Shown here: in pieces, positions 23,401 to 55,606 of the stretch | How the letters are laid out: every line of letters begins with the position of its first letter | Position numbering within the stretch: position 1 is the first letter of the stretch | DNA from: Octopus sinensis | Taxonomy: Eukaryota | Direction: 5' to 3' | Assembly: GCF_006345805.1 (NCBI RefSeq) | Contig: NC_042997.1 | Location: forward strand, 53,134,001 to 53,198,000 | DNA: 64,000 nucleotides | Notes under the pieces: model-generated | What the model saw: only the letters and a program-made list of their open reading frames with translations | The model's database searches: none | What the model was told of the DNA's origin: nothing | Made by a program: the position numbers and the translations under genes

Positions 23401-23702
23401 TCATCATCGTCGAGATAATCTGGAATGCCATCACCATCAGCATCTTCCTTATAATCTGGAATACCATCACCATCACTGTCTCCCTCTAGGTGGTCAGGGA
23501 TACCATCACCATCATCATCATCATCAAGATAATCTGGGATACCATCACCATCAGCATCTTCCTTGTAATCTGGGATACCGTCACCATCACTGTCTCTCTT
23601 TAGGTGATTAGGGATACCGTGTCCACCACTGTCCTTCTTCAGTTTTGCAGAGCTGGTTTTCGCATCAATCGAAAGTATTTTTCTTTTACAAAATGTGCAG
23701 AC
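14443..23702 (-). CDS. Giant exon encoding an about 3,085-aa Asp-rich protein segment of tandem TSP3-like (DxDGDGIPDxxD/E) Ca2+-binding repeats; one 1-bp frameshift at about 18888
   Basis: ORF track 18495..23759 and 14443..16143 lie in frames offset by one base. The offset is explained by ctggat versus the usual ctgggat at 18885-18890. Strong acceptor tctttttttcttttTAAG|GTC at 23704-23702. Unit [38 protein letters not shown] (114 bp), with unit-to-unit changes mostly at third codon positions. Unique N-terminal (VCTFCKRK...) and C-terminal (...[10 protein letters not shown]) flanks are in the same frame. Confidence 0.88.
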
Positions 23703-25439
23703 CTTAAAAAGAAAAAAAGAAAATATCTTACTATATTTGTAATATGGATTTTTGTACAAATCATTTTTTTTTTTTTCTTCATGTGGTGCAAGATGTACTG
23801 AATTGTTACAGCTTTCGTTTTAGGAAGTTGAAGGTTTATATTTGATTTCTGTGCAATACCGCACATGCAGTAAGTTTTGATAGTAAAATTTTGAAAGCTG
23901 TTTGTATCAAATGAACTGCATCTAAAATTCAAAGGATCAACCTCTATATACATATTGACACACAATTTGTATGATTATTATGTTTGGCCAAAAACATCTG
24001 AATCATACTTGACAACTTATACAATTCCTTTTATGAAATAGCTCAAACAATCATCTGTGGAATTAATGTGATCCATCATTATGTATTTTATTGTATCTAT
24101 TTACATGTTTACATATTTTATAATATCCTATTTAAATTATATTTATTGTCATAGTTATCATTTAGGTCTGTTGTTGCTTTCAACTTCAATATATGTTAAC
24201 ATTTGCTTAAGGTATTCCAGCCATGACCATCTCATCTTTTTGAAGTCTCTAGAACTACATTATTTGATAATATGCAATGTTTTTTCTCAAGACAGAAGAG
24301 TGATGTTTGACTGATATTTGGTTTTTATTTTTAGTAGGTCTGGCAGCTACTAAGATGCTCCCCATGATTTATGTTTATTGTTTGATAAGGTGGTGTAATG
24401 GAAGAAATCAAAATTCAGGAATTACCTTATTAGATTTCATTATCATATATTGTTTAAATTCACTGAATTCACCTATGTCTTTCAACTTGGGACTGATAAA
24501 ATAAGTACCAGTCATTTATTAGGGTTAATTCTATTTGTTATACAATTATCTCCTAAAAGGTACATGACATTGTAGGAATCATGTCATTATTAGCTTTGCT
24601 ATCATTGTCATCATTATTATTATTGATGGGCTGGCAGAATTGTTATTATGCTGGGCAAAATGCTAAGCAGCACTTTGTCCATCTTCGTGTTCTGAGTTCA
24701 AATTCTGCTCTGCTTTTCATTCTTTTGGGGTCAATAAATTAAGTACCTGTGAAACACTGGGGTTGACGTGATCAGCTAGTCTCCTCTGCCAAAATTTCAG
24801 GCTTTGTGCTTTCAGTAGAAAGGGCTGTTATTATTATTATTATTATTATTGTTATTATTATTATTGGTGAGCTGGCAGAATTGTTAGCATGCTGGGCCAA
24901 ATGCTTAGTGGCGTTTCACCCATCATTATGTTCTAACTTCAAATTCCAACAGGGTTGTCTTTGCCTTTCCTCATTTTGGGGTCAATAAAAAATAAGTACT
25001 GGTTGTGCAATGGGGTTGATACAATCAACTTATCTCCTCTCCTGAACTGGCCAACCTTGTGCTAAAATTTGAAATCATTATTGTTGTTGTTGTTGTTGTT
25101 ATTATTAGTGAGAATGCATGAGTGCAATAAATTTCTCATTCTCTTTGTATACTCTCTGCTGGTGATTTGTTTCATTTCTTCATATTATATTTCATCCGCT
25201 TTCAGTATCCCCAAATACTTATATCACTGTCCTTTCTCAACCTCTTTTATTGTTTGCCCATTTGGCATTTCAATACCCTACCTTCCTTCAAATCTTACTC
25301 ATTTCATTTTCAACATAGTGTACATATCCATAAAAAGATGATTTATCTGACCATATCCTTTTCCCAAATCATAAGCTATTTTAACTTTATGCAATATCAA
25401 ACTGAGTGGTATAATGGCCAATATAAATAGTAGTGGAGA

Positions 25440-26765
25440 TAAGCTATTGCATTAAAATATTCCATGTCTGATGTTCACTTTTCCAAGTCTTTGTTTTCCT
25501 CCAATCAATTCAGTATTCCAATGTTTCGTACTTTCATTAACCATTTTCTCCATATTTTCTACCTCTCCAAACATGTTCATTGTTTTACTTATCCAGCTGT
25601 ACAATACTGTGTCATATGCTCTTTTGTAATCTAACCATGCTACATTTAGTCCCATCAATTTGCACGTACAATTTCTAATTATCTAATTATCAATTAATAG
25701 TGGTCTTTTGTTGCCTTACTTTATTTCCTGCATCCTTTCTGCTCTTCTGGAAGTAGATTATAACTTTCTGGATGATTAGATAACTTTTTCACCAAGACAC
25801 TGGTCATAAGCTTGCACATAAGTGGTAAACAGGTTATAGGTAAAAAATCTGATGTCAAGTTACCTTTCAAGGGATCCTTGAGACATAACAGCATTTGTCC
25901 ACTTGTCATCCAGGTAGGGACATGACCATGTTACAGGCTTTCATCCAGTTGTGCTGCGATCCTTTCATGCTACTGTATAAAGTTCTTCAGCCAGTAGCCT
26001 TGTACTCCTTCCAAGCCAGGTCCTTTCTAATTTACTATTTTATTTTAAACTTCAGTCTCACTGTATATAGATTGATTCTGACCTCCTTTTCGTCTTGGCA
26101 CAACTGCAAGTTGTCTTTCCACCTGTTTTAGCCACTCTGCACTTTCTTAATGTCTCACTGACCTTTTTTTACAGTTCACTCCAAAATATTTTACTTTCTT
26201 TGACATCAGGAATCATTTCCTGATGTTGGTTCCCCTCTATTTTGTCAAAAAGATGCCTTCTATTTGATTGGAACAGTCTATTCTGTTCAAAGCTTTTGCA
26301 TCTAGTATCATATCTTTTCAGTTTGGCCTTTAATAATATCACCCTTAGTGACAATTCTTCATGTACTGTTTACTTCTCCCTTTCTTCTAACCTGTACTGT
26401 CCATTCAACCATCTGATTACTCACTCATTCTTGAGCTCTCCTCTCATTATCCTATTCTATTACCCCACTTTTTTCCGTATCTTTTCTGACTTCAGTCATA
26501 TTTTCTTCCTCCAGTTTAGTTCTTCCTTTTCATTTCCTTTAATTTCTTCAGTTTTCCACTTGTAGCCTACTATGTCAGCTACATCATTAGCAGCAGCTAT
26601 GATTAGCTGGTTTGTTCCACTGATGTTTTCTGTTCTAATCAAGCTCAAAATGTCATTTACTTTGGCTCTGGCTCTCCTTACTTTCCTTCTGTCCATATAT
26701 CTGACATTTGGTGGTACTTCATTGTTCCCATAACACATTTTACCTCACAACATTTCCAGAATCTC
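25440..26765 (-). mobile_element. R4/Dong-clade non-LTR retrotransposon, N-terminal and RT fragment, decayed
   Basis: ORF pieces ...PITCLPLMCKL...LPEEQKGCRK, VAWLDYKRAYD, and FEQNRLFQSNRR. Confidence 0.85.
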
Positions 26766-26821
26766 CTTCTCTTCATCATTCAAATCTTGTGCAGCAGTTG
26801 TTGTTATTATTATTATTATTA

Positions 26822-26854
<33 letters not shown>

Positions 26855-27027
26855 TATTATTATTTTTTTTTTCTTCTTTCAAATTTGCTTCCATTTCTTG
26901 ACGAGTGTCTTCCCGACTCCTAGGGCAAAGAAACTCATAGTATACATTGGTAGGCCATTAAACTAAACTCAATAATTTGTTCATTTTTTTTTTAAGTTAA
27001 ATTAAAATACATGGGTAGTAATAGTTC

Positions 27028-27105
<78 letters not shown>

Positions 27106-27111
27106 TATTAC

Positions 27112-27154
<43 letters not shown>

Positions 27155-27184
27155 TATTATTATTGTCTTTGCATAGCTTCTAAT

Positions 27185-27990
27185 GCTGGAGATGTACTAC
27201 GGTGTCAGCTGTTCATTACCAGTGAACCATCCAGAGTATTGGAGTGGTTCCAAGCAGTGCAGCTTTCTACAAGTGCTCCACCCTTATTGCAGCCCCTATT
27301 TGTTTCATGTACTTCTCAAGATTTTTACTCACTGTTCCCAGGGCTCTTACAATTATTGGTACTACTACCACCTTTTCAGCGACCACAACTGCTTAACCTC
27401 CTGAGCTAACCTGTCATATCTATCGACTTTCCTTTCTTCCTTATTGCATACATTGTTGTCAGCTGGGCATGCTATATCTATGATCCAGCATTGTTTGCTT
27501 TCTTTCTCAATTAACACTATGTCTGGTTTCCTATTCTCTATCTCATGGTCACACTGAATCATAAAATCCCATAGGATCTTTACATTATCATTTTCGATGA
27601 TGTCTTCGGGTTTATGTTTGTACCACTTTTTTACTCTGTCAGGTCCATATTTGTTGCAAAGTGTCCAATGGACAATCCTTACTATATTGTCATTATGTCT
27701 CTTATAGCCACTGGGCTAGTGGCGTACATTGACTGGTAATATGCCACACAGTTTCACCATTTTGTCCACAAATTCTGCACTTATCACTTTCTAATGTGTT
27801 GTCTATTCTGTATTTGATGTAATTTGTTCTTAGTGCTTGCTCTTGGGCAACACAGATTAGAGTCTCCATTTCTGGTTTTAAATCACTTTTAGTCATCCAT
27901 AGCCATCTTTTTTCTCTGTCTTCAACATCTCTATGTAATTGTCTATGCATTCTTTTCTTAATCCACCTATTTTCAGTTTCATTCATTCAT
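27185..27990 (-). mobile_element. R4/Dong-clade 3' fragment (CCHC zinc knuckle plus restriction-like endonuclease) with (TAA)n tail
   Basis: AQEQALRTN...KCRICG...ETVWHITSQC and RKPDIVLI...CWIIDIACP. The (TAA)n run at 27025-27165 lies directly 3'. Confidence 0.9.
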
Positions 27991-28320
27991 TCATTCATTC
28001 ATTATTATTGTTGTTGTTGTTGTTGTTGTTATTGTTGTTATTGTCGTCGTCATCATCATCATCATCATTATTATTATTATTATTATTATTAGAGCAGTAG
28101 ATTGGCAGAATTGTTAGAATATTGGAACAAATGCTTTACCTTGTTTGTTCCAACTCCTTACATTCTGAGTTCAAATCCTGATGAAACGAAGTTTGCCTTT
28201 TATCTTTTTGGGTCAATAAAATAAAATACCCATCAAGTGCTAGGTCAATCTATCAACTAGCCCCCACCCAACAAAGTGTTGGCCTTGTGTCTATAACAGA
28301 AAGAGTTATTATTATTATCA

Positions 28321-28419
<99 letters not shown>

Positions 28420-29395
28420 GTGGGATGGATTGGTAAGGGCATTGAACGAAACACATTGCAGCATTTAGTTATGACTCTTTACATTCGGAGTTCAAATAAT
28501 GTCAAGGTCAACTTAGCCTTTCATCCCTCTGGGGTTGATGAATTAAAGTACCTCTCAAACACTGGGTTTGATTATAATCATCTTATCCTCTCACCCCAAA
28601 TTTCCAGCCTTGTTAGAAAATAGTATTGTTTAAGTGATGAAAAGTTAAAAATAGATCATTATTGTTAATGGGTTTTGATAGGAAATCCAGAGATGTTGCT
28701 CTATGAACATTTAAAAATTACCATCAGTTTTGCTTGACTAGGAATGACTTTTTTTTCATTGATCTTATTGTCAGTTGCCTAGAACTAATCCACTGTCTTT
28801 CAGTGAATTTTTATCCTTTTCTGTCCTATTTTCCCCTTTCATAGAATCATTTGTCTTAAAATTTGGATCTCCAAAATTCACAATTTCTCTTTGAAATGCA
28901 AATATGGATCCTTAACATAAAATAATAAAGTTCACTGAGATTGAAAAAGGAAAAATATTAGATGCAAATAGTGAAAAAAGTGGAGCTAAAAAGCGGTTTA
29001 GCATTTTTTTTTTTGTGGTTAACAGCAGTGTTGCAAACATAGCACTATAAGCTTTCCAACTGAAAAATCTTTGAATAACATTGCTACTTACCATAGGAAA
29101 TTATTTACAACAAAATTTACAACAACAACTAAGTTAACAACAACTATGGCAACATCAAAAAACAACAGCATAAAATCAACAGCAACAACAGCCTAGATAA
29201 TTGTTTTTAATTTAGGCACAAGACCGACAGTTTTTCAAGAAGTCACACTAACACCAATACTTGTCTGGTTCTTTATTTTATTGACCCTGCAAGGTTCAAA
29301 GGCAAAGTTGACCTTGGTCAGGTTTGAACTTGGAATGTAAAGAGCTGGAAGAAATACTGCAAGGCATTTTGTCTGACACTGCAAAGCATACTGTT

Positions 29396-29783
29396 GTGGA
29401 AGCACTCCGTCGGTTACGACAACGAGGGTTCCGGTTGATCTGAATCAACGGAACAGCCTGCTCGTGAAATTAACGTGTAAGTGGCTGAGCACTCCACAGA
29501 CACGTGTACCCTTAACGTAGTTCTCGGGGATATTCAGCATGACACAGAGAGTGACAAGGCCGGCCCTTTGAAATACAGGTACAACAGAAACAGGAAGTAA
29601 GAGTGAGAGAAAGTTGTGGTGAAAGAGTACAGCAGGGATCACTACCATCCCCTGCCGGAGCCTCGTGGAGCTTTAGGTGTTTTCGCTCAATAAACACTCA
29701 CAACGCCCAGTCTGGGAATCGAAACCGCGATCCTATGACCGTGAGTCCGCTGCCATAACCACTGGGCTATTGCACCTCCACAT
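29396..29783 (-). mobile_element. SINE-like element with 13-bp TSD, adjacent to a family-A SINE
   Basis: aaagcatactgtt at 29383-29395 and 29784-29796, and a tRNA-like head (gggaatcgaaacc on plus). CpG-rich. Confidence 0.8.
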
Positions 29784-30992
29784 AAAGCATACTGTTATCC
29801 ACTACCCTTAACAACAAGCTAAAAACTGTAAACAACAATAATAATAGCAACAAAACAATGAAAGAGAAAATATATTTAGCCCATGCCACAAACCAATGGG
29901 CAACACATTTATTTGAGGGAAAGTCAGAAGGAATCAAAAAGTATGGGAATGATATTCTATGCCCTGGAGTGATGTCACTTTTGAGCCAAAGAAATAATAA
30001 ACACTCAGAAAAGGTTCAATCTCTACACTTGCATAAATTGTAGACACTGAAAACTATATTACTCATCTGCAGTCAAAATTCAGGAGTCTACACAGAAAAA
30101 AACAATAATGGATAATGAGAACTATTTGTAGGGAATAGAAAACTTAAGAAGGTTTTTCATCCTTTTCGGGTTGATAAAATAAGTATGAATTGATCATTGG
30201 AGTTAATCTAGTTGACTTATCCACTTTCCCTAAAATCACTGTCTCTGGGCCAAAATTTGAAACCATTATTAGTATTATTGTTGTTGTTATTTTAGAAATA
30301 ATTTTTATTATTGCTGTTGCTGTTGTTATTTGAGTGATGGAGTAAGGGAACCATTAAATGATTGACTAAATGCCTTTTGAGTGATGGAGTGTACTGTTAA
30401 ATTTCCTGTACATTCTGAGTTCAAATACTGTTACAATTAACTTTGCCTTTTATTTTCAAGGAAGTTGATAAAATAGTAAAATCCCAGTCAAGTAAGGGTG
30501 TTTTAATTAACTATAGTTTCCCACCACTTTTGATGTGCGACCTTGTTCATTGACCAGAAATCTTTATTAATATTATTGTTGTTGTTTTGGGCTGTGATGG
30601 AGTGGCAGAACTGGGAATTGTCAGATTAAATAACCTCTTGTGATATTTAGTTACATGCATACCTCAATTTAATGGATCAGTCGGTTTCAAATGTCCGATC
30701 ATTAAGTGAGAGAGTGAGAGGCTAAGTCACATAGAAATATTGTTGTAATGCATTCTCATGGAGGAGATTTGAAGTAAGAAAATTTTAAAATGTTAAATAA
30801 AAAGCAAAACAACAGCATAGGCATGACCAATGATTTGATTAAATGAATAATGTTTTTGCTCATTGTGGGTTTATCACTCAATGTGAATTTGTCACTTGTG
30901 TTTGATTCACTCGAGGAAGAAATAATCATTCTTTCCTTTATAAATCTACCAAGAATTCCTTTCTTCAGTTAGGGTTTTCTTTGTTTTGTTTT

Positions 30993-31945
30993 TTACTTCT
31001 GCCAAGGAAGGAGGTTATGTTTTCATTGGCATTGGTTTGTCTGTCTGTGTGCAAAATAACTTAAAAAGTTGTGAACAGTATTTGATGAAACTTGCAAGAA
31101 AAGTTGGTAATGACACAAGGAACAGATGATGAAATTTTGGTAGTGATCCGGGAATTTTTATGGATTCTTGAAGGACTTTTCATTTGTTATATTTACTTTA
31201 CATGAAGTATTACAATATTATATTCTTTGATTATCTCTCTTGAAAACACGTTCATCGTTTCCACGTAACTTATGATGGCGTTGCTGTTTCCAAAGTTTAT
31301 TTTCGTTTCTCTATTACTAATTTTACTTGCATATCTATCTTAAAATGAGCTGCTTGGCGGAGGTCTGTGGAGGATGACATGACAAGCCTTGACTATTGGG
31401 ATCAACTGAAAAGGCTCAGGCTTTGCTCCCTCCACTACCGCTGTGAGCTCTATATCATCTGTATGATGTGGAAAATATTCCATCAACATTGCCCATCTTT
31501 AAAATTCGTCCAAGGCTTGGCCCCCGTGCCCTCCATCCACTACATAAAAGTTTGTGTCATATCACAACACTATGACAGAACTATTCCACCTCAATTGGCC
31601 CTGCTCTCTTCAACATTGTGCCATGAAAGAGGAAAGTGACTTCACAGCATTCAAACAATCCCTAGATGATTACCCCCAACAAATACCAGATAAACCACCC
31701 ACACCCAGATATGTCTCTGAAAACAATAACCCTCTGCTTGAATGGGCTATGGTTCCCCAGAGCTGACTGTGTATCTTTTCCAGGTGGTGCTATTAAATTA
31801 GACATGGCCGCAGTCAACTTCAGCTGAAACTTATCTAAGTAATCTAATCTATGTTATAACCTTTTAATCAAAGCATGACAACATGGGTATAGGGTGGAAA
31901 TTAGCTGCTTGGCGGAGGTCTGCACTCTCCGAGTGCTTTTCTATT
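30993..31945 (+). mobile_element. Helentron-associated (HINE/DINE-1-like) non-autonomous element
   Basis: 5' ttacttctgccaaggaaggagg is inverted relative to the subterminal cttggcggagg. A 3' hairpin gcactc..gagtgc is followed by a T-run. Confidence 0.65.
31368..31845 (+). mobile_element. CR1/L2-type LINE 3' fragment inside the Helentron element
   Basis: LDYWDQLKRLRLCSL.YR.E.YII.MMWKI resembles the CR1-group ORF2 end (LSY.ERL..L.L.SL..RR.R...I..WKI). Confidence 0.65.
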
Positions 31946-32215
31946 TAGATCTGTAGCAATTCTTTTACTTCATTTAGAATTTGAATGTTGAAGTTTGAAA
32001 ATCTCAGTTATTTTTTGAGTATGTGAAAAGGCTCCCTTTGAGCCCTTTGTGAGGGCAGAAATAAAAAAGGAGTTTCTACTGTTAAACTTTCTTCAATGTT
32101 TTCATAATGGTTGGGCTCATGATCGTAAGGTCATGGGTTAAATTCCCCCACCAGACATTGAATCCTCAAGCAAGGTATTTTATTTTATGCTGTTCCAATT
32201 TACTCAGCTGGTGCA

Positions 32216-32251
<36 letters not shown>

Positions 32252-33169
32252 GCTGTCACATCTCTGATGTTCTGCTGGGTGGAGAGTAGGAGAGTTAAGA
32301 AGGTGTTAATGTCTTATGACTTCATAGATACCTAAAACAACCAGTGAAAGTGTGATACAAGTGACCCGGTCATATTCATTTGCAAGCAATGTATCAACTT
32401 TTAATGAATTGATTCAAATGTTTTACGACTAAAGAGTATTGGGGAGAACATAAATACAGTATGTGTGCTCAGCACCACCATGTAAACTAACTGAATGAAC
32501 AAACTCGTATACATTTACTATCAAGGTGCATTGTAGTAATTAAACTTTTAAAGCAACTGTTCTGAATGCTTAGTATATATTTTGCTCAAGTAACTTTAAT
32601 TTTTAGAATTAAAAAGCAATCATTAAAGTGGCATGTAGTTAAGTGGGAGATTGTTAAACAAAGTATTGCTGCCTGTTGCTTTATACTTTACGCTCAAGTC
32701 TTGCTGGAATTTTCATTGCTTTTCAGGTTTCAGAAGATATTCATAACGTACTAACTTCAATTTTATTGACTACTTCTCTGTACACATTTGTAATCTTGTA
32801 GTAAAATTAGAAATCAATATTATTATTGGCAGCAAGACAGTAGTATTTTTAGCATGTAGGCAAAATGTTTAGTAGCATTTTGTCCGTCTTTATGTTCTGA
32901 GTTGAAATTTCCATGAGGTTGACTTTACCTTTCATCCTTTTGGGGTTAATACAATAAGTACCAGTTGAGCTCTGGGGTTGATGTAATTGACTTACTCCCT
33001 CCCCAAATTTTGAAACCAATATTATTATTGTAGTTTTTGCTGAGGTGGCAAATCAATATAACTGTAATTATTTTTCTTAACCTAAAAAACACAAATGTCA
33101 AACTCAGCTACTCTGTCTCACAGCATACTTTCCTCAGGTGTTACACCATTTTAATTTGTTAAAGGAAAG

Positions 33170-35901: not shown

Positions 35902-35946
<45 letters not shown>

Positions 35947-36159: not shown

Positions 36160-36219
<60 letters not shown>

Positions 36220-39239: not shown

Positions 39240-39270
<31 letters not shown>

Positions 39271-39709: not shown

Positions 39710-40645
39710 CATCATCATCATCATCATTATATAACGTCCGCTTTCCATGCTAGCATGGGTTGGACAATTTGACTGAGGTCTGGCAAACCAGATGCCTGCA
39801 CCAGGCTCCAGTCTGATCTGGCAGAGTTTCTACAGCTGGATGCCCTTCCTAATTCCAACCACTCCGAGGATGTAGTGGGTGCTTTTATGTTCCACTGGCA
39901 TGAGGGCCAGTCAGGCGGTACTGGCATGAGGGCCAGTCAGGCGGTACTGGCAACAGCCATGCTCAAATGGTGCTTTTTATGTGCCACCTGCACAGGAGCC
40001 AGTCCAGTGGCACTGGCAATGACCTTGCTTGAATATTTTTTCATGTGCCACCAGCACAAGTGCCAGTAAGGCAGTAAGTGCAGGTAACAATCACACTCGA
40101 ATGGTGCTCTTCATGTGCCACCGGCACAGAAGCCAGCCTCTTGCTCTGGCAACGATCAAGCTCGGATGGTACTCTTAGCGCTCCACTAGCATGCCAGTCA
40201 TCGAATTTGATTTCGATTTCACTTGCCTCAACAGGTCTTCGCAAGCAGAGTTTAGCGTCCAATCAAGGAAGGAGCCAATGAATAAGTGGGCTGGTTACAC
40301 CCCTGGCATAGGCCACAAGGTTATGGTCTCACTTGGCTTGCCGAATCTTCTAAAGCACAGCATATTTCCAAACGTCCCGGTCACTAGTCATTGCCTTGGT
40401 GAGGCCCAATGTTCGAAGGTCATGCATCACCACCTCATCCCAGGTCTTCTTGGGTCTACCTCTTCCACAGGTTCCCTCAACCGCTAGGGTGTGGCACACA
40501 GCTATCCACATCCATTCTCGCCACATGGCCATACCAGCGCAGTCATCTCTCTTGCACACCACATCTGATCCTTCTTAGGTCCAACTTTTCTCTCAAGGTA
40601 CTTACTCTCTGTCGAGTATGCACACTGACATTACACATCATATAA
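39710..40645 (-). mobile_element. 5'-truncated RTE LINE with (GAT)n tail
   Basis: ORF 40350..40562 VEGTCGRGRPKKTWDEVV..DL..LGL, with a 3'UTR shared by the copies at 44235, 54470 and 56990. Confidence 0.9.
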
Positions 40646-40649
40646 ATTA

Positions 40650-40728
40650 TATATAATATCTATCTATATATATATTATGTATATATATATGTATACATAT
40701 GATATATATATATATATTTATATATATA

Positions 40729-40776
<48 letters not shown>

Positions 40777-40812
40777 ATATATTATATATATATATATTAT
40801 ATATTATGTATA

Positions 40813-40869
<57 letters not shown>

Positions 40870-40875
40870 ATATAT

Positions 40876-40916
<41 letters not shown>

Positions 40917-41047
40917 ATATTATGTATATATATATTATATATATATATATATATTTTATATTATGTATATATATATATCATATATATGTATACATATTAT
41001 GTATGTATTTTATACATATTATGTATATATATTATATATATGTATAC

Positions 41048-41078
<31 letters not shown>

Positions 41079-41340
41079 TGATAGAAATGGCAAGACAACA
41101 AAAGAATGAAAGAGACCTCAATATTATGTAAATAGAGGAATTTATCTGTAAATATAATAAGTGGGAATTATTCGGTAACCATGATGAAACTCTGAGTTTC
41201 GGATGTCGGGCCAGAAACCCATGCCGGCATCTCTTCAGTTATAGGGCCATAAAAAAAAATGCTATGAAAATGACTGTTAAAACAAGGGAAATTACTTTGT
41301 TTTTTCTAGGTGTTGCAATTCTGGCCAAAACTTATCTAAG

Positions 41341-41374
<34 letters not shown>

Positions 41375-41597
41375 TTATATATATACATATATATATATAC
41401 ATATATATTATACATATATATATATATACATATATATAATACACATATATATATATACATATATATATATACATATATATATATACATATTATATATACA
41501 TATATATATATACACATATATATATACACATATATATATATACATATATATATATATAATATATATATATACATATATATATATACATATATATATA

Positions 41598-41652
<55 letters not shown>

Positions 41653-41775
41653 CATATATATTATACATATATATATATACATATATATACATATATATAT
41701 ACATATATATATATATATGTATATATATATTATACATATATATATATTACATATATATTATATATATATATATGT
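40650..41775. repeat. Two large degenerate (TA)n/(TACA)n microsatellite blocks (40650-41080, 41340-41775)
   Basis: Near-pure AT dinucleotide sequence. Confidence 0.95.
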
Positions 41776-42033
41776 ATCATGAGGGCACATAACCTAGTGG
41801 TTAGGGTGTGCAAGATCATGCTTTCACTACATGGACCAGGTAGTGCATTGTATTCTATGTATTCTAGAGCAAAACACTTAATCTAACATTGCTCTTTGAT
41901 CATTCCAACATCTAATGCATGGTACACTGTGCAGCTGTTTAGACTATGATTTGATGAAAGGAGTGGGCTAATGTGCAGCATATACATTTGATAAACAAAT
42001 CATTTGTGCAAGTTGTTTAGTAAAAACTGAACA

Positions 42034-42069
<36 letters not shown>

Positions 42070-42444: not shown

Positions 42445-42477
<33 letters not shown>

Positions 42478-43633: not shown

Positions 43634-44234
43634 TATATATATATAAATATATATATATACTGTATATATATGTATGTATATATATATGTATATATAGGGA
43701 GTATTGTATTTCGCTTGAAGCATTGTGCATTGTTTGTATGGTACAACAATGCACTATAATACAAAAAAATGAACTATATACCTGTTGTAATGTAGTTATC
43801 TGATGATATTTTGGAATAAAATTCCTTCTTCAGATATTCTTAGACGGAGTTACTGCCATATATATAATAATATATATATATACTGTATATATATGTATGT
43901 ATATATATATGTATATATAGGGAGTATTGTATTTCGCTTGAAGCATTGTGCATTGTTTGTATGGTACAACAATGCACTATAATACAAAAAAATGAACTAT
44001 ATACCTGTTGTAATGTAGTTATCTGATGATATTTTGGAATAAAATTCCTTCTTCAGATATTCTTAGACGGAGTTACTGCCATATATATAATAATTATATA
44101 TATATAATAAGAATATCTGAAGATGGAATTTTATTCCGAAATATCATTGGACTATGAATAACTAAATTACAACAGGTATATCGTCCATTTTTTATATTAT
44201 AGTGCATTGTTGTACCATTCAAAACTTTTTATAT

Positions 44235-44690: not shown

Positions 44691-44717
44691 ATGTATAAAT
44701 ATATATATATATATATA

Positions 44718-45519: not shown

Positions 45520-46200
45520 AAAGAAATGAAGCTAGTATGTTCCACCGAATGGGCAATGTCAGTGTACATGCATGACAGAGTGCAAATGATTTAAGACAAA
45601 AACTGGCATCAGATGTGTGTAAGAGAGAAGATTGTGCTGGTTTGGTGATGTGATGCATATGGATGAGGAAAGCTACTTAAAGAAGTGCTGATCTGTAATT
45701 GTGGAGGGTACCTGTGGAAGGAATAGACCCAGGAAGATGTAGGATGAAGTAGTGAAAAATGATCTTCAGATGCTGGGCCTCACTGAGGAAATGACATAGG
45801 ACTGGGAGTTGTGGTGATTTGCTGTACTCAAGAAGATGCATCAAGCTAAGTAAATTTGTAGTCATTCATGCATACAGGCATGTCCTTTGCAAGTGCCAGT
45901 GCCACATAAAATGCACTCATGCATTTTTACAGGGCCAATACCAGTGCCATGTAAAATGCATGAATGCTGGTGCTGCATAAATGCATTCATGCTGATGCCA
46001 TGTAGATGCACCTGTGCCCGTAGCATGTAAAAAGTACCCAACGCATTCTGTAAAGTGGTTGGCATTAGGAAGGGCATCCAGCTGTAGAAACCATACTAAA
46101 ACAGTTAACTGGGGTCTGGATTGCTCACTGGCTAGCCTATTCCTATCAAACCATGCCAGCATGGTACATGGACAGTAAACAATGAAGATGATGATGATGA
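45520..46200 (+). mobile_element. 5'-truncated RTE LINE
   Basis: LCWFGDVMHM, gtggagggtacctgtggaagg (VEGTCG), the ggttggcattaggaagggcatcc motif and a (GAT)n tail at about 46190. Confidence 0.8.
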
Positions 46201-48112
46201 TATATATGCATATACTTATTTTATTTGTATCATTTAAAAAATTTAGAGTCTTAATATATTTGTTGCACATCTTTTATCTCACTCTACTGTTAAATATCTT
46301 TAACTATATAAAGGCAATTATGTGAATAAAATTAAATATAAACAACTTGGCTTAGATATACAAAATATATATGTGCAGGTGTGGCTGTGTGGTAAGGAGC
46401 TTGCTTCCCAACCACATGGTTCTGGGTTCAGTCCCACTGTGTCGCACCTTGGGCAAGTGTCTTCTACTATAGCCCCAGGCTGGCCAAAGCCTTGTGAGTG
46501 GATTTGGTAGACAGAAACTGAAAGAAGCCCATTGTATATATATAAATATATATATATGTTTGTTTGTTCCCCCTCTGCCACTTGACAACTGACTTTGGTG
46601 TGTTTACAACCTTGTAACTTAGTGGCTCAGCATAGGAGACTGATAGAATAAGTACTAGGCTTACAAAGAATAAGTCCTGGGGTCGATTTGTTTGACTAAA
46701 GGCAGTATTCCAGCATGGGCAGTCAAATGAAAGAATATCTATACAAGCAATAAGAAAGCAAAGACTGAAGACTTTCAGGCGATGAATATTTAAGTTTAAA
46801 AATATAGATATTTATATTAATAAATCAAACTTATACAGAGTACAAATGACAGAGAAAATTACAGAAAATGAGGTAAGGTGTTTTAATCCAGCAGCTGATT
46901 TTGGGGGCTCATAGTTCTATCATGTTGGTAGATGTAGTTCACCATAATATACAGGCTATAATGGAAGCAAATAAACATTGGATAAATTGAGCCTCCATCA
47001 TCAGGGTACAAAAAATCTTACACTTCAGATCTTATATTCCACCTCTAAAATTCTCTGCATCATGATTTTTTCTACCTGGTGACAGAGGCTTGATTTATTC
47101 AATACTTTTTCACTTCCATTACAGCCTGCATATTGGGTTGAACTACATCTACCAATATTATGATGGCTCTCTGAGCTCTCAGAAACAGCTGTTGAGTTAT
47201 AACACTTTGCCTATTCACCTTTAATTTTCTGTTGTTTGTACTCTGTGCGAGTTTGATCTATTAATATAAATATCTATATATTTACACTTAAATATTCGTC
47301 TGAAAGTTATCAATTTTTGATTTCTTTCTGTTTGCATGTATACATATTTCATATATCTAACCCAAGCTGTTATATTTAATTTGTTTATCTGCATAATTAC
47401 TTCTATATCTGCTCACCTTGATTCCACTTATCATCACTCTTTACCCCTTGAAATTGGACATCAGAGTCTAATTTCGAATCATTTGAGTGCCATTAAGTAT
47501 TTTCTTTATCGAGAATCTCTGGATTTCATCTGTTGACTATATATCTAACTATATATATATATATGTGTGTGTGTGTATTGTGTAATTATATATATGTGTG
47601 TGTGTGTGTGTATAACTGCATTTACATCTATTTGTAACATGCATACATTAATAAATTCTGGTGGCAAAACTAAAAAAAATAATTGTTATTACATATTAAA
47701 TTTGTTTTTGAAGCATTGAAATGTATTGTAGAACAAGTAGAAAGATATGCCAGCAATTTTTTCTGTTCTCAAAAGGATTTTGTCCTTTATATATACTGTT
47801 CAGTATTTATGTTTTGAAAAAAATTGTTATTAATAGAGCGTTGAATGGCAGAAAAGGTAGATTGAGGGATTAACTTTCTTCCAAATTTCAATCACATGAA
47901 AGTTAGCTTTGCTTCTCATTCAATAAAGTAACTGTCAAGTACTTGAAGGTTAATCTAATCAATTGTTCCCCTCACCTCAAATTTGTGGTCTTATGTTTGT
48001 GTTAAAAATCATTATTGTTAAAGGTGCAAGGTAGAATTCATAAAGTATCAGAACAATGCATTTCAGTATTTTTTTTTGCATCATTTTATGTTCTTATACT
48101 GGAATGAAGGCA

Positions 48113-48330
48113 GCGAGTTGGCAGAAACGTTTGCACTCCAGTCGAAATGCTTAGCAGTATTTCGTCTGCCATTACGTTCCGAGTTCAAATTCCACCGAGG
48201 TTGACTTTGCCTTTCATCCTTTCAGGGTCGATTAAATAAGTACCAGTTAATCACTGGGGTCAATGTAATCAACTTAAACCCCTTGTCTGTCCCCTCTATG
48301 TTTAGCCCCTTGTGGGCAATTAAGAAATAT
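48113..48330 (+). mobile_element. Family-A SINE with 17-bp TSD
   Basis: atactggaatg(a/g)aggca at 48096-48112 and 48331-48347. Confidence 0.88.
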
Positions 48331-48399
48331 ATACTGGAATGGAGGCAAGAATAATTAGAAAGGTTGCTATGAAAATGGTAGAAAAAAAAAGAGAATTTT

Positions 48400-50070
48400 A
48401 AAATATGCTGACATCAACTTTGTCTTTTCTGTGAATGGCAACTGAATTATTTACTCTCTAAAAGATCATTTTCCAATGCCAACTTTTCATTACAACTTCA
48501 GCGAGTATGGTAAAAGCAATGCTTTGCAGACTTCTGAAACAAGACTGAGATATGGCCAGAATTATCTCCCATACTTGCCAAAAACTTTAGTTATTGAATA
48601 ATATAATTTTTATTCCTTGGTTTTTATTTTGAGGTTCACAGTATTTAATTTCATAACAGGAAGAGACCTATGGTTAAAGGTATTTTTCTTGGCATATCTC
48701 TTATTTTTCGACAATTTATTTTAGACATCAAGTTGCAGTTTGACTGAGACTTGGCTGCTATTTAGAGCAGGTTGAAGCTGCCTATGGGTTTTTATTGGAA
48801 TGTAGAATTACACATGTATCTCATCTAATAATTAGGAGTGAAACTTAGTTTAGCATTAAAAAATCGTATTATATGTAAGGAAGACTTGTTTGATAAACAA
48901 TGAGAAGGATAAGCATGGATAAATGAATCAGGAGCAGTGTACAGTGAAGAATTTAGCATATTTATGGCTCTTTCATAAGGATTCTGTTCTCAGTTCTTTC
49001 TCTTTAATCATTGCTTTTGAGGCAATCTCAAATTAAACTATAAATCCTTGTTTTCTGACAATATGTTCCTACTGTACAATAATCATGTCTGACTTATTTC
49101 TCTTGAAAGATGTTAAGGGCTTTTTCATAGAGCCAGAACATAGTTTGTAGAAGTTGTCTAGATTCCCTTATGGGTGGGGTGGGGGCTTTCTTGGCAGATT
49201 AAGCAAGTGTGAAGGGTTATACTTCAGCTTTGTGGGGAGTCAGCAATTGATCAAAGCTGAAGTATTTTTTAACTTAAAAGGGAAGGAGTGGTCCTCAGCA
49301 TTAAGCTTTAGTTATGTATGTAGGTTCAATAAGAAAGTCAGTAATTACAAGATCAAGCACTTATGACTTTGAGGGTTATAAATATATGTTGTCAATGACA
49401 AAAGAGTGTGAGGTACAAAATTGTTTACTGGATTGCCATTAACCTTTTGTGAAAAGTTGAAGGATGATAAGTATTAGCCTCTATGTAGAAGTGAGCATTA
49501 TTGCAAGTAATAGTAAAGCTGCTATCAAATATACAAGAGAAAGAGTAGCTGCTGTGTGTGTCTGGATAATCAAGCCTTTAGTTACATCAAAATTGATAGA
49601 TTGGGTTAGAAAACTGTTACTGTACATAGCAATATTGACAGCAAATTTCAAATCTAAGATGAAACCCATATGCAAGAAATTAAATCAAGAAATTCTTGTA
49701 CCAGACAGTCAAAGGTTTTGCTTATGCCATGTGCAGTGACATTACTTATAAGGTATGGGACAGAGGAAAGTAAATTGCATGTACATCTTGCTCTACAGAA
49801 ACTATACAAATAGTTATCAAGAAAAGAAAGAGACTCAAAGCACTGGAGAAATTTATTTTTGAAGAACGCCTCCTGAAAATGAAAAGTAATGAATAAAATA
49901 GAGCAATAGTTCTGTAGTTGTTAAGGTTAGAGAAGTTGCCTTTCTTGAGATTGGGACATTTTACCAGGTATCTAAAGACTGGAAGATATCTATAAAATGA
50001 AAGATTGAAGTTTGGCAAGACCAAGAGATAGCTCTAGAGCACATTCAGGTCTTGGACATGTTAGTTTCAA
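48400..50070 (-). mobile_element. Decayed LINE reverse-transcriptase region (CR1/Jockey-group)
   Basis: ORF 49746..50024 contains PNLKKGNFSNLNNYRTIAL, matching the P.PKKG....P.NYRPIAL RT N-terminal motif. Confidence 0.6.
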
Positions 50071-51603
50071 GTGAGAGTTGGTGTTCTGTTACATAGCACA
50101 CACACTTCAATAAAAAAAATGTACTCCATCTGGTGAGAGAAATATTATTTAATGGTCACAATACATGTATTAAAGTGCTACTAATAGTTTCATATGTTGA
50201 GAGAACTCAAACATATTTTCAGGAGCAAACCACATACAATGAACTAAATAATTGAATAAATAGAAGGAAGGCAGCATATAGAAAATGCAGACAGTAAACT
50301 AAGAAAAATGAAACTAAAACGTCAAAAGGTAAAAAGTGCTATTGTCCTTAATAAGGTTGGAAAGATATCAAGTCAGGAAAAGGCAGAATTTTCCAATTCT
50401 TCAGAATATATTTATACATATGCATGCAACCACTAATTCCTAACTCTACTGAACTCCAGGTCAGAAATTTTCAGTAGTTACATGCATATGTATAAATATA
50501 TTCAGATGAATTGGAAAATTCCACCTATTCCTGATTGACTTGATATCTTTCCAGCCTTATCATTTAAGGCCAAAGGAGGATAGCACTTTTTACCTCTTGA
50601 CACTTTAGTTTCGTTTTTTGTTTACTGTCTGAGTTTTCTATATGCTGCCTTCTCAGCTTCATCGTGTTTCTTCTATTTATACAATATTTTTGTTATGATA
50701 TGTGGTTTGCACCTGAAGAACATGTTTGAGTTATCTCAACACATCAAACTATTAGTAGCACTTTAATACATATATTGTGACCTTTAAATAATTTATATAT
50801 ATATATAATTGTGTGTAAAGGCATATGGCCTAGTGGTTAGTTAACTTTGACCGACATCTCTTGCTATCATGTATTCTCATTTAGCCACTCACAAATAGTA
50901 CCTTCATGCTTCTTTTTCAGTAATGGTAAGGGTGAATTCATTCTGAATCCATTTCTCCAATGACGTCTTGACTTTCTATGGCACAGTCTGACACTCCAAC
51001 AAAGATCTGATGCTTACAACACAAACCATGTGCAAATCCACTACTCTTGTAATCATACATGATAACCTAGCTTTATAACTTTGTAATGCTTGTTGCTCCC
51101 CCTTTCCTTCCAGTGTGAGTGGATAGACAACACACAACCCATAATTATCTATAAATATAAGTTGTCTCCTGATCGATATAGGAGACAACTGGTGTCACAA
51201 ATCTGAAATTACAATTTGGTAAATGTATCATATATACCCCAGTACAATAAATAAAACATTCAATTATTTACATTCTGTCCATAGAGTCAAAGAAGGCATT
51301 CCAGTTACACTAATAAACTTTCTACTTGCATTATAAAGCTCTCAAAGACTTGTTTGAACATTTGATTACTAGCTGGACAGTTTGTGCTGGCTATGGTTCT
51401 TCTTAATCTCTTCCCATAAAAGACTAATGCCCTTACCAAAATTCCCAATAAAACTGATTTACATTGATGGTCCAAAAAAATTGTTTTCTTAGCTCTAAAA
51501 GTTTCAAACAAGATTTTAAGTGTCATAACTTTGTTATATAAAAAAAAAAACCCAAAAAGTTATTAAATGCAAATTTTAAGTTTCTAGATACAATCATGTC
51601 TTG

Positions 51604-51638
<35 letters not shown>

Positions 51639-52208
51639 ATTTTTAAGGGAAAACCCATTTGACAATATATTGGTTTCAATTGATAATCATGGAAAGTAAA
51701 TGGTATTCTGTGCTTAATGGTTGAATGAAAACAATCTGCAAACTTCTGTAAGCTCTTGATAAGTATAATAATAAAAGCAAACATGCATTGAAGGGCACAC
51801 ATTAGTTGGCACATTTAAAACAGGACAATAAATAATTGTAATAGAACAGGATTAAAATATAAAATTAATATTTACACTGCAATTATAACCAGGTAGGAGT
51901 TTTAGCAGGAAAATTACTGGAGGAGAGTGATGTGTGATTACAAGGAAGAAAAGAATGAAGGAATTAAGCTTTTACCTACTTTATGTAACTAATTAAAATC
52001 CTCACCATCATTAATAAAATACAACCTGAACTATAAAACCCATTTTACAACTTGAAAATTGATTCATCATCATAACCAGATAAATATATTGCATCAAAAT
52101 TTTCAATAGGAAGAGAATTCAAACAAATTAAAATTTAAATTGAACATCTTTCAGTTACGTGAAAAAAAATACTAAGTAGGAACTAAGATTATAATTAGTT
52201 TTATCCAA

Positions 52209-52452
52209 TTTATTTGTATTCAAATATTAAAAAACAAATTTTAAATACATTAACCAAAAAGTAATACCTTTGACAACAGAGGAAAAAAAATGTTCCACTT
52301 TCTTGTCAGTAATTGGCTTCTATAAATAGTTATCTCAAAGGTTGAATGAAAATGGATACAGATGCAAAACTATTTTATCACTGTTATAAAGAAACCAACT
52401 TGATAATTTTAAGAGGGCAGAAAAAGAGAAAGAATAAGTAGAAAGATTTATT
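52209..52452 (-). promoter_or_regulatory. Candidate AATAAA polyadenylation signals of the short GRP94 transcript (52447-52452, 52209-52214)
   Basis: Plus-strand TTTATT hexamers about 260 and 500 nt downstream of the stop. The motif is common in AT-rich DNA, so support is weak. Confidence 0.35.
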
Positions 52453-52712
52453 CACAAAGAATGATGTGTACACTTTCAATTCACTTCAGGCATAACAGTT
52501 TCACATGAAAAAAAATACAGAAACAAACAGAGAAAAGTCCTCTCAAAAAATGAAATGATATTTGACAGCAATATTTGATTTGATGAAGTATTAGTGAATT
52601 CTCCAAGGTAGTTGATAGGTGGTACTTGGTGGTAATAGGAAATTTCACACTTGTCAGGAACAACAGCTGCCAACTTTGTTAGTGTGAACAGAATAATTCC
52701 TCTTCAATGAGG

Positions 52713-52739
52713 TTATAATTCATCTGAATGATGGGATAC
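52713..52739 (-). CDS. HSP90B1: Endoplasmin/GRP94 terminal coding exon VSHHSDEL* (KDEL-like ER retrieval signal)
   Basis: Acceptor cttttcattttatCAG followed by GTA TCC CAT CAT TCA GAT GAA TTA TAA. Phase 0 matches the previous donor. SDEL fits the [KRHQSA]-[DENQ]-E-L pattern. Confidence 0.85.
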   Translation of the reverse strand, partial: VSHHSDEL

Positions 52740-55513
52740 CTGATAAAATGAAAAGTAATATAACGTTATAAACACAGAATCCCCTGCCAACCAGTACTGT
52801 GTGCCTCTCTGCCAGGTTTGTGTGTGCACACTAGGAAAGCCTAACAAAAGAGTTAGTGGAAGTGTCAAAACACACCATGCTTAATATGTATATATTATAT
52901 AATCAAACAGCTATTAGTCAAGTTGTCTACAGACTACTTAGAGTATTTCTATAACTTCAGAAATCTACTGATGCTATATCTATAAGGTTAACCCTTTTGT
53001 TACCATATTTCCCTGCCTCATGTGTTTTAATTATATTAATCACAAATTTAGGCTTACTTTGTGAAGCATATACAAGTGTCTTGAACACAAAAGATTCTTC
53101 CCTAAGCCAATTATGGAATTTGTCTTAAAATTACTGATTACAAATACGGTTAAATTTCAAATACAGCTATTTAAATTTTATTTAAATATCAATAAGGTAT
53201 TAGCCAATATAGCTTACTAAATGCTCTGCATTTATTGCAAATATGCCATGTGTTTGTTGAATTTGTCCCATTTCCTATGCTTACATTTTACATCATAATC
53301 AGTCATTGCGATTATATGGAACACTTAAATTGAATACACAGTCAACAGGTTTCCAGCCATGAGGATAACTGACTGGCTTCAGTTTCTAAAAACTTTGGAA
53401 GCTAAATGTTTACATTTTCTTTCTAGAAATTATTGCTTGACATTATTTACACATTCAGGAATTGAAACATTTGGTTTAATGACTAATTTTTAAATATTTA
53501 CTGCATTTGAAAATCATTTCAAATTCAGAGGTATTATTACTAAATCTGAGGTTTATATAGTAAGGGGGTGGGGGCAGAGCATAAAAATAAAAGGAAAAGT
53601 ATTAACATACTCTAACAAGTTACTTATGCTGAAAATGTTGGAGTGTGTACAGCATGTTTGTTTAGTGAAATCCTACTGTGAATATAGCAATATTTGTTGA
53701 TATTTTAACATGAAAAAAATGGGTGGTATTGGGTGGGTTGGTAACAAAAGGGTTACATACAAGAGCAGGAACAAAATTCCTTCAGTGGTATTAACACTTA
53801 AATGCTGTAGACAATTATAAACAAGAGGAACAACAATTTTGCCCTTCAATTTTGAAAGGTGAAGAGCACACACACAAAGGCAAAAGCAGCAACACAATAA
53901 CTGGAAGATTAAAAATTCATACTATTGTCACAGAATTCATGCAAATTACATCATCATGCAAATAATTTGTAAAGTTGAGCATGCTATGGTATTGTCAAGC
54001 AAACAATCTAGTCAAAGAAAGCATGGTAACAATTATCTTTGAATTGGGGAAAACAATGACAATCTGGATCTTAATGTAGAGAAAGTACTTTTATCATTTA
54101 TTAGCATCTACACTTATGTTTTGCAAAATATGGATAAAATTTTTAAAAGATGAGAGAAAGGAAACATACATGTAAAAGAAATTGATAACTGAGTTTTACT
54201 GCAGAATATACAGATTGGAGCCGTACATAATATGGAAAGTAACTTTAATCAAATTAATTTCAGAAATATCTAAGTTGAACTGTCTTTGTATTTGGTAGAC
54301 AATCAATTCAGTACTGCTTATTTTTTAAAAATAAACTGCTAAAATTTAAGATACGATCTATATGTTTGAGTGACAATGTAAAAACTAATTTGGTCAATCA
54401 CTAAAATCCACGCAAATTTATGATATAACCACAAAACTTTTGTGTAAAAAATTATCAATTAGGAATTATCGTCATTGTTTAACGTCCACTTTCCATGCTA
54501 GCATGGGTTTGACGGTTCGACTGAGGGCTGGCAAGCCAGAAGGCTGCACCAGGCTCCAATCTAATTTGGCAAAGTTTCTACAACTGGATGCCCTTCCTAA
54601 TGCCAACCACTCTGAGAGTGTAGTGGGTGCTTTTTACATGTCACCAGCACGAGGGCATTGACCATGCTTGAATGGGGCTTTTTACGTGCCACCGGAACAA
54701 GGGAATGTAATTGATAAAATCCAATGTTCGAGAGATCAGGAGAAAACTGAATTATATAGTTTCTGTTCTCTCTCTATTGCAACATAACATGTATTTTTGA
54801 ACTACTTAATTGTATTAGGTTCTTTCAGCTAAAAAGTGCCTGTTCCTCATAACTACACAAATTTACAATGTCAATATTTGCCCCATATATATTGGGATGC
54901 AAGGTCAATTTTCATAAATACAGTAAACATTGCTCAACATTCAAAAAGATGGAGCTGGAACTGATCAGTAAGGGTATTTCTATATTGAAATGAGTTAAAA
55001 ATTTCATTTATTCCAGTCACCGTTGCAATAAAAGTAAACCTTTATATCATAATTGTGTGCATGCATACATATATAACTGGACAAAAGCATGGCTAAGTGG
55101 TTAATAAGCTCATTTAGCAACCATGAGGTTCATGAGAGAGCCTACTGTGCAGTGTCTTGAACTTCACTATAGCTTTGGGATGTCCCAAGCCTTGCAAGTG
55201 AAATTAGATAGATGAAAAGCCTGTTGGAGAGGCTGTGCCTGCATTTCAAAAAATCAGTCTCATACTGACTTTTTTACTTGAGAATTGTGAAGGGTACATG
55301 CTTGTGGAATACCCAACCACTTCCCATGCTAATTCAATAATTGTTCAGTTGATTGTTCCATCAGTTGCAATACAATACACAGTTGTTCAATTATATATAA
55401 TCATCACTGTTAACCATAAAAATACAAAGGGAATCCAGACAAATTAAATGACCTGGAAAAAATAACTGGCAATCAATTTTGTCATGAAAAATATATTTAC
55501 GGAGTTTACTTAC

Positions 55514-55606
55514 TTTTTCTTCCTTTTCATCTGTTTCACTTGCATCAGCATCAACCTTTTCTTCCTGTTCTACTTGCTCCTCTTGTTCTTCAGGTTCTTC
55601 CTCAAC
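55514..55606 (-). CDS. HSP90B1: Endoplasmin/GRP94 acidic-tail exon VEEEPEEQEEQVEQEEKVDADASETDEKEEK
   Basis: VEEEPEE matches the start of the GRP94 acidic tail. Acceptor tttTAG, donor AAA|GTAAGT. 93 nt, phase 0-0. Confidence 0.92.

Follow-up and report, generated by a model that had tools for sequence, protein, structure and literature searches.

A giant aspartate-rich exon behind octopus GRP94 as a probable alternative last exon of a spiralian chaperone gene

Background

Canonical GRP94 (HSP90B1, endoplasmin) combines an HSP90 C-terminal domain with an acidic, Ca2+-binding tail and a C-terminal xDEL signal for retrieval to the endoplasmic reticulum (ER), and we know of no vertebrate, insect or nematode GRP94 that carries an array of thrombospondin type-3 (TSP3) repeats. 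Such repeats are described from thrombospondins and COMP, where they form the 'calcium wire', and from giant bacterial surface proteins (TSP3_bac; OmpA-anchored and T9SS/gliding types), while calsequestrin and the C-domain of calreticulin are very acidic polypeptides of the secretory pathway that act as low-affinity, high-capacity luminal Ca2+ buffers. In the 64,000-nt stretch of Octopus sinensis DNA analysed here (the window; contig NC_042997.1, positions 53,134,001 to 53,198,000), the end of the GRP94 gene is followed on the same strand by a giant Asp-rich exon that encodes a long array of TSP3-like loops. Judged from its sequence and that of related loci, this exon is probably not a separate gene and would instead be an ancient, conserved alternative last exon (3' extension) of spiralian GRP94.

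The nearest counterparts on record are long 'endoplasmin' models of flukes, which have been in the databases for years under such names as 'putative endoplasmin', 'putative thrombospondin' and 'Endoplasmin, variant 2'. Literature searches found no publications that describe or discuss these models, and no published description of a GRP94-TSP3 fusion or of its conservation. The cephalopod and snail copies of the extension appear to have gone unrecognised so far.

GRP94 and the Asp-rich exon in octopus

GRP94 and the Asp-rich exon both lie on the minus strand, and all coordinates are positions of the window. The window carries the C-terminal third of GRP94, the N-terminal two thirds lying beyond position 64000. 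Five exons of the C-terminal domain, located from open reading frame (ORF) fragments and by tblastn with the mollusc GRP94 proteins P0108, P0100 and P0491, occupy approximately 63621-63436, 62313-62059, 61137-60997, 60541-60452 and 59667-59479. They match Pfam HSP90 (PF00183, E 1e-110, profile positions 240-514 of 518, that is, the middle and C-terminal domain), and their best database matches are endoplasmins, with 78-83% identity to mollusc GRP94 fragments. The penultimate exon (55606-55514; 93 nt, phase 0 at both ends) encodes the acidic tail (VEEEPEEQ...DEKEEK; VEEEPEEQEEQVEQEEKVDADASETDEKEEK) and ends in the phase-0 donor AAA/GTAAGT, with its GT at 55513-55512 (here and below a slash marks the splice boundary). 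It is followed by a terminal mini-exon of 27 nt including the stop (52739-52713; acceptor ttttatcag/GTATCCCATCATTCAGATGAATTATAA), which adds VSHHSDEL and thereby the ER-retrieval signal, and then by an AATAAA at 52452, 261 nt after the mini-exon. The short form of octopus GRP94 is thus of the KDEL type, with an acidic C-tail ending in an xDEL retrieval signal, here SDEL. The canonical join to the mini-exon is in use, since a 1,318-nt spliced contig of a related animal (P0100) ends ...EKEKVSHHSDEL.

The giant exon is a 9.26-kb Asp-rich frame that runs from an acceptor at 23702 to a stop at 14445-14443. The first-pass annotation had called the acceptor strong and in phase 0, and it is borne out: ttttctttttttctttttaag/GTCTGCACA, after an 18-nt pyrimidine tract. 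Within 1-4 codons of the acceptor comes the motif CTFCKRKIL (23699-23673), which joins a CxxC to R-x-aliphatic-L. A tandem array then occupies 23590-14749, with about 75 units of 114 nt (38 aa) according to a tandem-repeat search (TRF; period 114, 74.5 copies, 85% matches). Each 38-aa unit forms three thrombospondin type-3-like Ca2+-binding loops, for a total of about 228 (228 G[IV]PD loops were counted in the product), and the only Pfam domains matched are TSP3_bac (E 1e-30 to 1e-32) and TSP_3 (E 3e-18 to 6e-18). The array is followed by a non-repeat tail (14748-14443) that ends ...SDEKDR and has some homology to the tail of an ORF in the snail Bulinus. Across 62 in-register units the variation at codon positions 1, 2 and 3 is 1.4%, 0% and 13.3%, with the same pattern in both halves of the array; because variation is concentrated at third positions, the Asp-rich frame is genuine coding sequence. 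When its two frames, which are separated by a single-nucleotide shift considered below, are joined, the product has 3,086 aa and 325 kDa, with 1,150 Asp (37%) and only five Cys, none of which lies within the regular repeats. Within the otherwise near-perfect array there is a degenerate island at approximately 19850-19480 (codons about 1290-1400), where the sole internal Cys and the first Met are found; two sub-arrays that expanded separately may meet there.

The giant exon cannot initiate translation on its own, because its first in-frame Met is codon 1378, after 1,377 codons that lack one, and the nearest ATGs upstream of the acceptor (23782 and 23764) are out of frame. At its other end, no further exon was found downstream of 14443, either among ORFs ending in xEL and a stop or by homology to the K/P-rich tail of Bulinus, and the giant exon is therefore treated as terminal; an additional 3' exon beyond the stop is possible. 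The stop itself is embedded in a good donor-like sequence (GATCG/GTAAAT, 14450-14443).

Splicing from the acidic-tail donor to the giant exon would remove an alternative intron of 31,811 nt (55513-23703), which holds the SDEL exon, the GRP94 3' untranslated region and its poly(A) signals. The proposed join 55514/23702 is in frame, leading from ...EKEEK directly into the giant exon, with the junction letters GAAAAGGAAGAAAAA/GTCTGCACATTTTGT. In these respects the first-pass annotation, which had placed the exon about 29 kb downstream of GRP94 on the same strand, and had proposed a 31.8-kb in-frame intron that skips the 27-nt exon, was accurate: the gap is 29.0 kb and all its coordinates are correct. 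We also agree with its estimate that a match of phase alone would arise about one time in three by chance.

Comparison of the array with known Ca2+-binding systems

The DxDxDGxxDxxD loops of the octopus array match the Pfam TSP_3 family, and by analogy with the thrombospondin/COMP repeats the array would be expected to bind many Ca2+ ions cooperatively. Unlike the thrombospondins, however, it has no Cys pairs in its repeats, no thrombospondin C-terminal lectin-like domain (TSP_C), no EGF domain and no coiled coil, and it has about 228 loops where a thrombospondin has 13; for these reasons its product is not a member of the thrombospondin family. The best matches to the array are the giant bacterial TSP3-repeat proteins, with 55-70% identity over approximately 1,000 aa. 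This likeness is limited to the loop motif, since the bacterial proteins end in bacterial sorting or anchor domains, whereas the window array is embedded in an intron-containing animal gene. The non-repeat tail by itself, and the last 1,200 aa compared with 1.84 billion representatives, gave only generic TSP3 matches, the top 150 being bacterial surface proteins. None of those 150 matched the N-terminus of the giant-exon product, and no homologue of the tail outside Bulinus was found among them or in the tail-alone search. Calsequestrin and calreticulin resemble the array in being very acidic proteins of the secretory pathway, but there is no sequence or domain relation (TSP3 being the only Pfam assignment), and the predicted long form of GRP94 would have no retrieval signal.

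The same layout in a snail, in flukes and in a compact genome

The arrangement seen in octopus recurs elsewhere. In the snail Bulinus truncatus, the phase-0 donor of GRP94 (...KPSDSD/gtaagt) is followed by a 33-nt exon encoding ESEDTARDEL and a stop, and 2.6 kb farther downstream, on the same strand, the acceptor ttttattttag/GAAGAGTGTACGTTCTGTAAGAGAAAA (that is, ttttattttag/GAAGAGTGTACGTTCTGT...) opens an uninterrupted ORF of 2,170 aa (19771-26280 of the locus taken from JAGDYQ010000047.1). This ORF begins EECTFCKRKL..., continues with TSP3 repeats and has a K/P/Q-rich tail that ends KKTEL; the Bulinus annotation calls no gene at this position. At the N-terminus, CTFCKRK is identical between window and snail at 7/7 positions, a score reached by 0 of 2000 shuffles. 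The two tails are collinear (CxxxTC, HEQK[IY]DL[LI]xV), with a Smith-Waterman score of 67 (z 6.4) that was reached by 1 of 2000 shuffles.

In the fluke Schistosoma mansoni, the phase-0 donor ...SSQID/gtaagt is followed directly by a 36-nt exon encoding ENQSSSPKDEL and a stop. The 796-aa endoplasmin known from cDNA (AAF66929.1) uses this KDEL exon, and Logan transcript contigs encode the same product, ending ...SSQID/ENQSSSPKDEL. The long S. mansoni model skips the exon and resumes 8.6 kb away, and the exon that carries CPTCRRLL has a phase-0 acceptor four codons ahead of its first Cys. Opisthorchis viverrini has the phase-0 donor ...TPSDE/gtaagt, a skipped exon encoding VGEPSNAKDEL and a stop, and, 20 kb on, the acceptor cttacttcag/GATAAGGAAAACTGTCCTACATGTCGCCGTCTATTG; its long model joins the penultimate exon straight to DKENCPTCRRLL, which is exactly the join proposed for the window. 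A still tighter version is found in an AT-rich, short-intron, compact animal genome that is represented by Logan contigs (L005 and L006; SRR23372228 and SRR31984834), for which raw ORF calls were used. Here (L005 11212-13872) the phase-0 donor ...ESEEK/gtaagt precedes an 18-nt exon encoding AKEEL and a stop, and 255 nt separate that stop from the acceptor ttttag/GTAAGAAATACTTGC..., which opens the CLFCQRKILS exon, encoding VRNTCLFCQRKILS (VRNTCLFCQRKILSVES); small TSP3 exons follow.

Five lineages thus have four features in common: a mini-exon devoted to the xDEL signal, a donor in phase 0 ahead of this mini-exon, an acceptor in phase 0 beyond it on the same strand, and, within 1-4 codons of that acceptor, a CxxC-basic motif that leads into a TSP3 array. 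The pattern CxxC-[KRQ]R-x-[IL][LM] has a single match in all six frames of the window, namely CTFCKRKIL, and it also matches once, at the equivalent place, in each of the loci L001 (S. mansoni), L003 (Bulinus), L005, L008 (O. viverrini) and L009. In a control GRP94 locus (L007), HDEL lies inside the main exon and the downstream genes are on the opposite strand. Chance does not account for the recurrence of this donor, mini-exon, acceptor and motif at four further loci, and the comparison strongly supports that part of the first-pass annotation which had suggested an alternative last exon of GRP94.

Long endoplasmin models in flukes

The protein homology search listed proteins of up to approximately 1.75 times the query length, so that short queries hid the long fluke proteins; the query that revealed them was a hypothetical GRP94-extension fusion of 3,379 aa. 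Its top matches were fluke proteins of 1,900-3,400 aa, from at least five annotation projects, which have HSP90 domains together with an Asp-rich extension. Three species of Paragonimus and seven of Schistosoma are represented among them, as are Trichobilharzia, Opisthorchis and Calicophoron. Clonorchis has such models too, and the fluke annotations list 'endoplasmin' isoforms of this layout, with 1,500-3,300 aa, beside the KDEL form. Examples are S. mansoni XP_018651354.1 (old Smp_030300.4, 2,126 aa), O. viverrini XP_009176728.1, Paragonimus westermani KAA3676735.1, Clonorchis sinensis KAG5444747.1 and KAG5444748.1, and the models of S. bovis, S. rodhaini and Calicophoron. All long fluke models examined begin at the GRP94 signal peptide, span the whole chaperone and differ in their 3' ends. 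Six were read across the junction, and each passes from the acidic tail into a linker and then into many TSP3 loops. An identical CPTCRRLL lies in the linker of 11 of the long models scanned, with no exact match in the Calicophoron and Clonorchis models.

The fluke long models share with the proposed octopus isoform the full GRP94, the phase-0 donor after the acidic tail, the skipped xDEL exon, the CxxC-[KR]R-x-L motif and the TSP3 array. They differ in how the extension is built. Fluke extensions are spread over many exons in 75-90 kb, with long K/S/T/P-rich linkers and repeats that contain Cys (DHDCDGIPD), whereas the window extension is a single 9.26-kb exon of nearly identical 38-aa units that lack Cys. 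In flukes the array is followed by an amphipathic-helix tail, and a helix-like motif such as ...SILKRIENIFGVE... ends 7/10 of the fluke tails read.

Alternative last exon or independent gene

Taken together, these comparisons make an alternative last exon the simplest reading, because an exon that has no start of its own is always placed for in-frame splicing to GRP94. After the phase-0 donor at 55514, octopus GRP94 would have two alternative ends. Splicing to the 27-nt exon would yield the ordinary, ER-retained GRP94 that ends in SDEL. Skipping this exon together with its poly(A) site, and splicing to 23702, would yield a long isoform that consists of GRP94 with its signal peptide, the CxxC-basic motif, about 228 TSP3 loops and a short conserved tail.

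Several points weigh against this reading. The splice from 55514 to 23702 in octopus, like the corresponding one in Bulinus, is predicted from sequence, and the octopus extension lies 29 kb past two poly(A) signals of GRP94, with DNA rich in repeats between them. There is also one break in the Asp-rich frame, at 18888-18887. The long isoforms of flukes are known as annotation models, and gene predictors overlook very small terminal exons and continue into the neighbouring gene, from which fusions of just this kind would result; moreover, the S. mansoni gene identifier has been changed, from Smp_030300 to Smp_340630 (PMC9559072). The proposal of cleavage by site-1 protease, discussed below, has a motif of four residues as its basis. 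Finally, molluscs have short secreted TSP3-repeat proteins with signal peptides of their own, such as P0034 of Biomphalaria.

The last of these points makes an independent downstream gene biologically possible, and such a gene is the main rival, although we regard it as rather unlikely. It would encode a secreted TSP3 protein whose short 5' exon or exons have gone undetected between 23.7 and 52.7 kb. Its tight linkage to GRP94 would then reflect conserved microsynteny, for instance because the two genes are regulated together under stress or in secretion, and the fusions annotated in flukes would have to be artefacts of prediction. This view accommodates the fact that GRP94 has its own stop, its AATAAA and 29 kb of spacer, and the shortness and variability of signal peptides put them beyond the reach of homology searches. 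For that same reason, the interval comparison is a weak negative: when the stretches between GRP94 and the extension in Bulinus and S. mansoni were compared with that of the window by tblastx and blastn, only low-complexity matches emerged, and no conserved exon. A scan of 23.7-52.7 kb for an ATG, a hydrophobic stretch and a donor found none at the strict threshold. The six candidates for a separate first exon that appeared at a relaxed threshold were weak, mostly derived from microsatellites and of low complexity, and were rejected, in line with the earlier impression that no convincing start or signal-peptide exon lies between the two. Bulinus has one weak phase-0 first-exon candidate (MILFHISFVTKLNKFYL/GT). 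In Taenia solium, too, the Asp-rich region is annotated with no HSP90 domain on record, at a locus whose upstream sequence is too short to show whether a GRP94 gene comes before it.

Stand-alone secreted TSP3 proteins, to which this rival can likewise appeal, are exemplified by P0034 (Biomphalaria glabrata A0A2C9KXT0), P0001 and P0029. Each of these short TSP3-repeat proteins has a signal peptide of its own and lacks the CxxC-basic motif; as secreted Asp-rich proteins they make up a class that stands apart from the GRP94-linked one.

Against an independent gene, the compact genome leaves only 255 nt between the AKEEL stop and the acceptor, into which no usable combination of ATG and donor fits. 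Strand, order, phase and motif position are all kept in molluscs and flukes, no fluke isoform examined starts anywhere other than at the GRP94 signal peptide, and the Bulinus annotation has no gene start in the corresponding place.

The same 255-nt gap, being a typical intercistronic distance, is what would be expected if the extension were an operon-like downstream cistron, co-transcribed with GRP94, whose acceptor takes a trans-spliced leader so that no fusion protein is made. Flukes use spliced-leader trans-splicing, as a matter of general knowledge, and flatworm leaders end in AUG. The product, however, would start M-(V/E)xCxFC... and would have no signal peptide, a surprising lack in a TSP3 array that binds Ca2+ and has paired Cys. 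In addition, cephalopods and gastropods, in which spliced-leader trans-splicing is not known to us, keep the same layout, and a gap of 29 kb, as in the window, is out of keeping with an operon. This is the more remote of two minor rivals and seems very improbable.

The octopus interval itself, which lies between the stop of GRP94 and the 23702 acceptor, is rich in repeats, with runs of (TTA)n and (AT)n. Its middle is AT-rich (GC 27%) and includes a 1.1-kb (AT)n tract (40640-41777), and a 223-nt unit is duplicated 2.1 times at 98% identity at 43635-44106. An ORF fragment at 27986-27702 on the minus strand, which matches the zinc-binding region of reverse transcriptases (Pfam zf-RVT, E 3.5e-5, below the gathering score), is the remnant of a retrotransposon within the proposed intron. 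Elsewhere in the window, a minisatellite of units of approximately 33 nt (3801-4704) has an open frame on either strand, one reading EILNEIRPFV... and the other LRISTKGLIS..., and is probably non-coding. Rfam and tRNA scans of the window returned nothing.

The frameshift and the state of the octopus exon

As assembled, the ORF that opens at 23702 stops after 1,735 aa, and the Asp-rich frame continues downstream in the -1 frame. The cause is a shift of one nucleotide at 18886-18890, on the minus strand, where the sequence reads ATCCA (CC at 18888-18887) and every other unit has ATCCCA. Both sides of the site stay open, for 1,602 and 1,483 codons, and show the same codon-position constraint. Since both halves are open and constrained and the site is a C homopolymer, an assembly error in the CCC run is the likeliest cause; the shift is likely such an error or else a very recent change. 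The fusion of roughly 400 kDa envisaged by the first-pass annotation holds only if the shift is an error.

The other minor rival takes the frameshift at face value and sees in the octopus exon a dead or dying pseudo-exon, only canonical GRP94 being made. The absence of a poly(A) signal within 1.3 kb of the giant-ORF stop would fit this, the first such signal coming only 1.3 kb downstream, at 13166. Against it, both open halves share the strong, third-position-only variation of a coding frame, the lesion falls in a C homopolymer of the kind in which assembly errors are typical, and the acceptor, the N-terminal motif and the tail are all intact. A remnant is therefore improbable; the alternative last exon is the reading that is followed below.

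Possible fate of the long isoform

The first-pass annotation had suggested a switch between a normal chaperone and a form that also serves as a Ca2+ store in the ER. As stated, this is not supported, since the long form loses SDEL and ends ...SDEKDR. Nor is ER retrieval conserved in the long form, because the C-termini of its relatives vary (KTEL, HDH, NSSG and others). A protein that has no retrieval signal would be expected to leave the ER, unless the GRP94 dimer interface lets it pair with the short form and so stay behind; such pairing could still retain part of the long form. A proteome of the S. mansoni miracidium lists the endoplasmin isoforms.3 and.4 (197 and 239.5 kDa) among secreted proteins, with 20 peptides each, of which one is unique to each (PMC4723143); this listing is weak but consistent evidence that the long form leaves the ER.

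The boundary between GRP94 and the extension suggests what may follow. Site-1 protease (SKI-1/S1P, MBTPS1) cleaves its precursors in luminal segments at the motif R-X-aliphatic-Z, in which Z is not V, P, C or E, with an optimum of RRLL (PMC8310232). A sequence of this form is conserved at the boundary in all five lineages, as RRLL in flukes, RKIL in the window, RKLM in Bulinus and RKIL in the compact genome. The likeness to site-1 protease precursors is one of motif only, the fluke RRLL being the stated optimum itself. Cleavage at this junction would separate GRP94 from a polyanionic protein that binds Ca2+ and is secreted or located beyond the ER, and from sequence we infer that the long form may exit the ER as a precursor and be cleaved in this way.

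A wider and more tentative proposal, which we consider possible but less likely than not, is that GRP94 acts across Spiralia as a built-in carrier for a giant Ca2+-binding protein, by means of an exon swap, a chaperone in cis, release by site-1 protease and a secreted polymer. In place of the retrieval signal, the alternative last exon would append a chain of TSP3 loops 1,000-3,000 aa long, and the chaperone would supply the signal peptide and perhaps help with folding in cis. The released Ca2+-binding polymer would be a candidate participant in the chemistry of the statolith, shell, eggshell or calcareous corpuscles. Such a chaperone-cargo polyprotein design would be more than 500 million years old.

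Implications

Annotation pipelines at present either fuse the extension to GRP94, as in flukes, or miss it, as in Bulinus. If the alternative last exon is real, it would identify unannotated ORFs of 2,170 aa in Bulinus and 3,086 aa in octopus, and it would explain why a fluke 'endoplasmin' appears in proteomes as a 'secreted' protein of 200-240 kDa. It would also provide a natural case in which an ER-retention signal is traded for a cargo domain by alternative splicing. For cephalopods, the product would be a candidate molecule for calcium handling or the control of biominerals; and molluscs and flatworms, at the least, would make from the GRP94 locus a second and completely different product, a giant Ca2+-binding polyanion.

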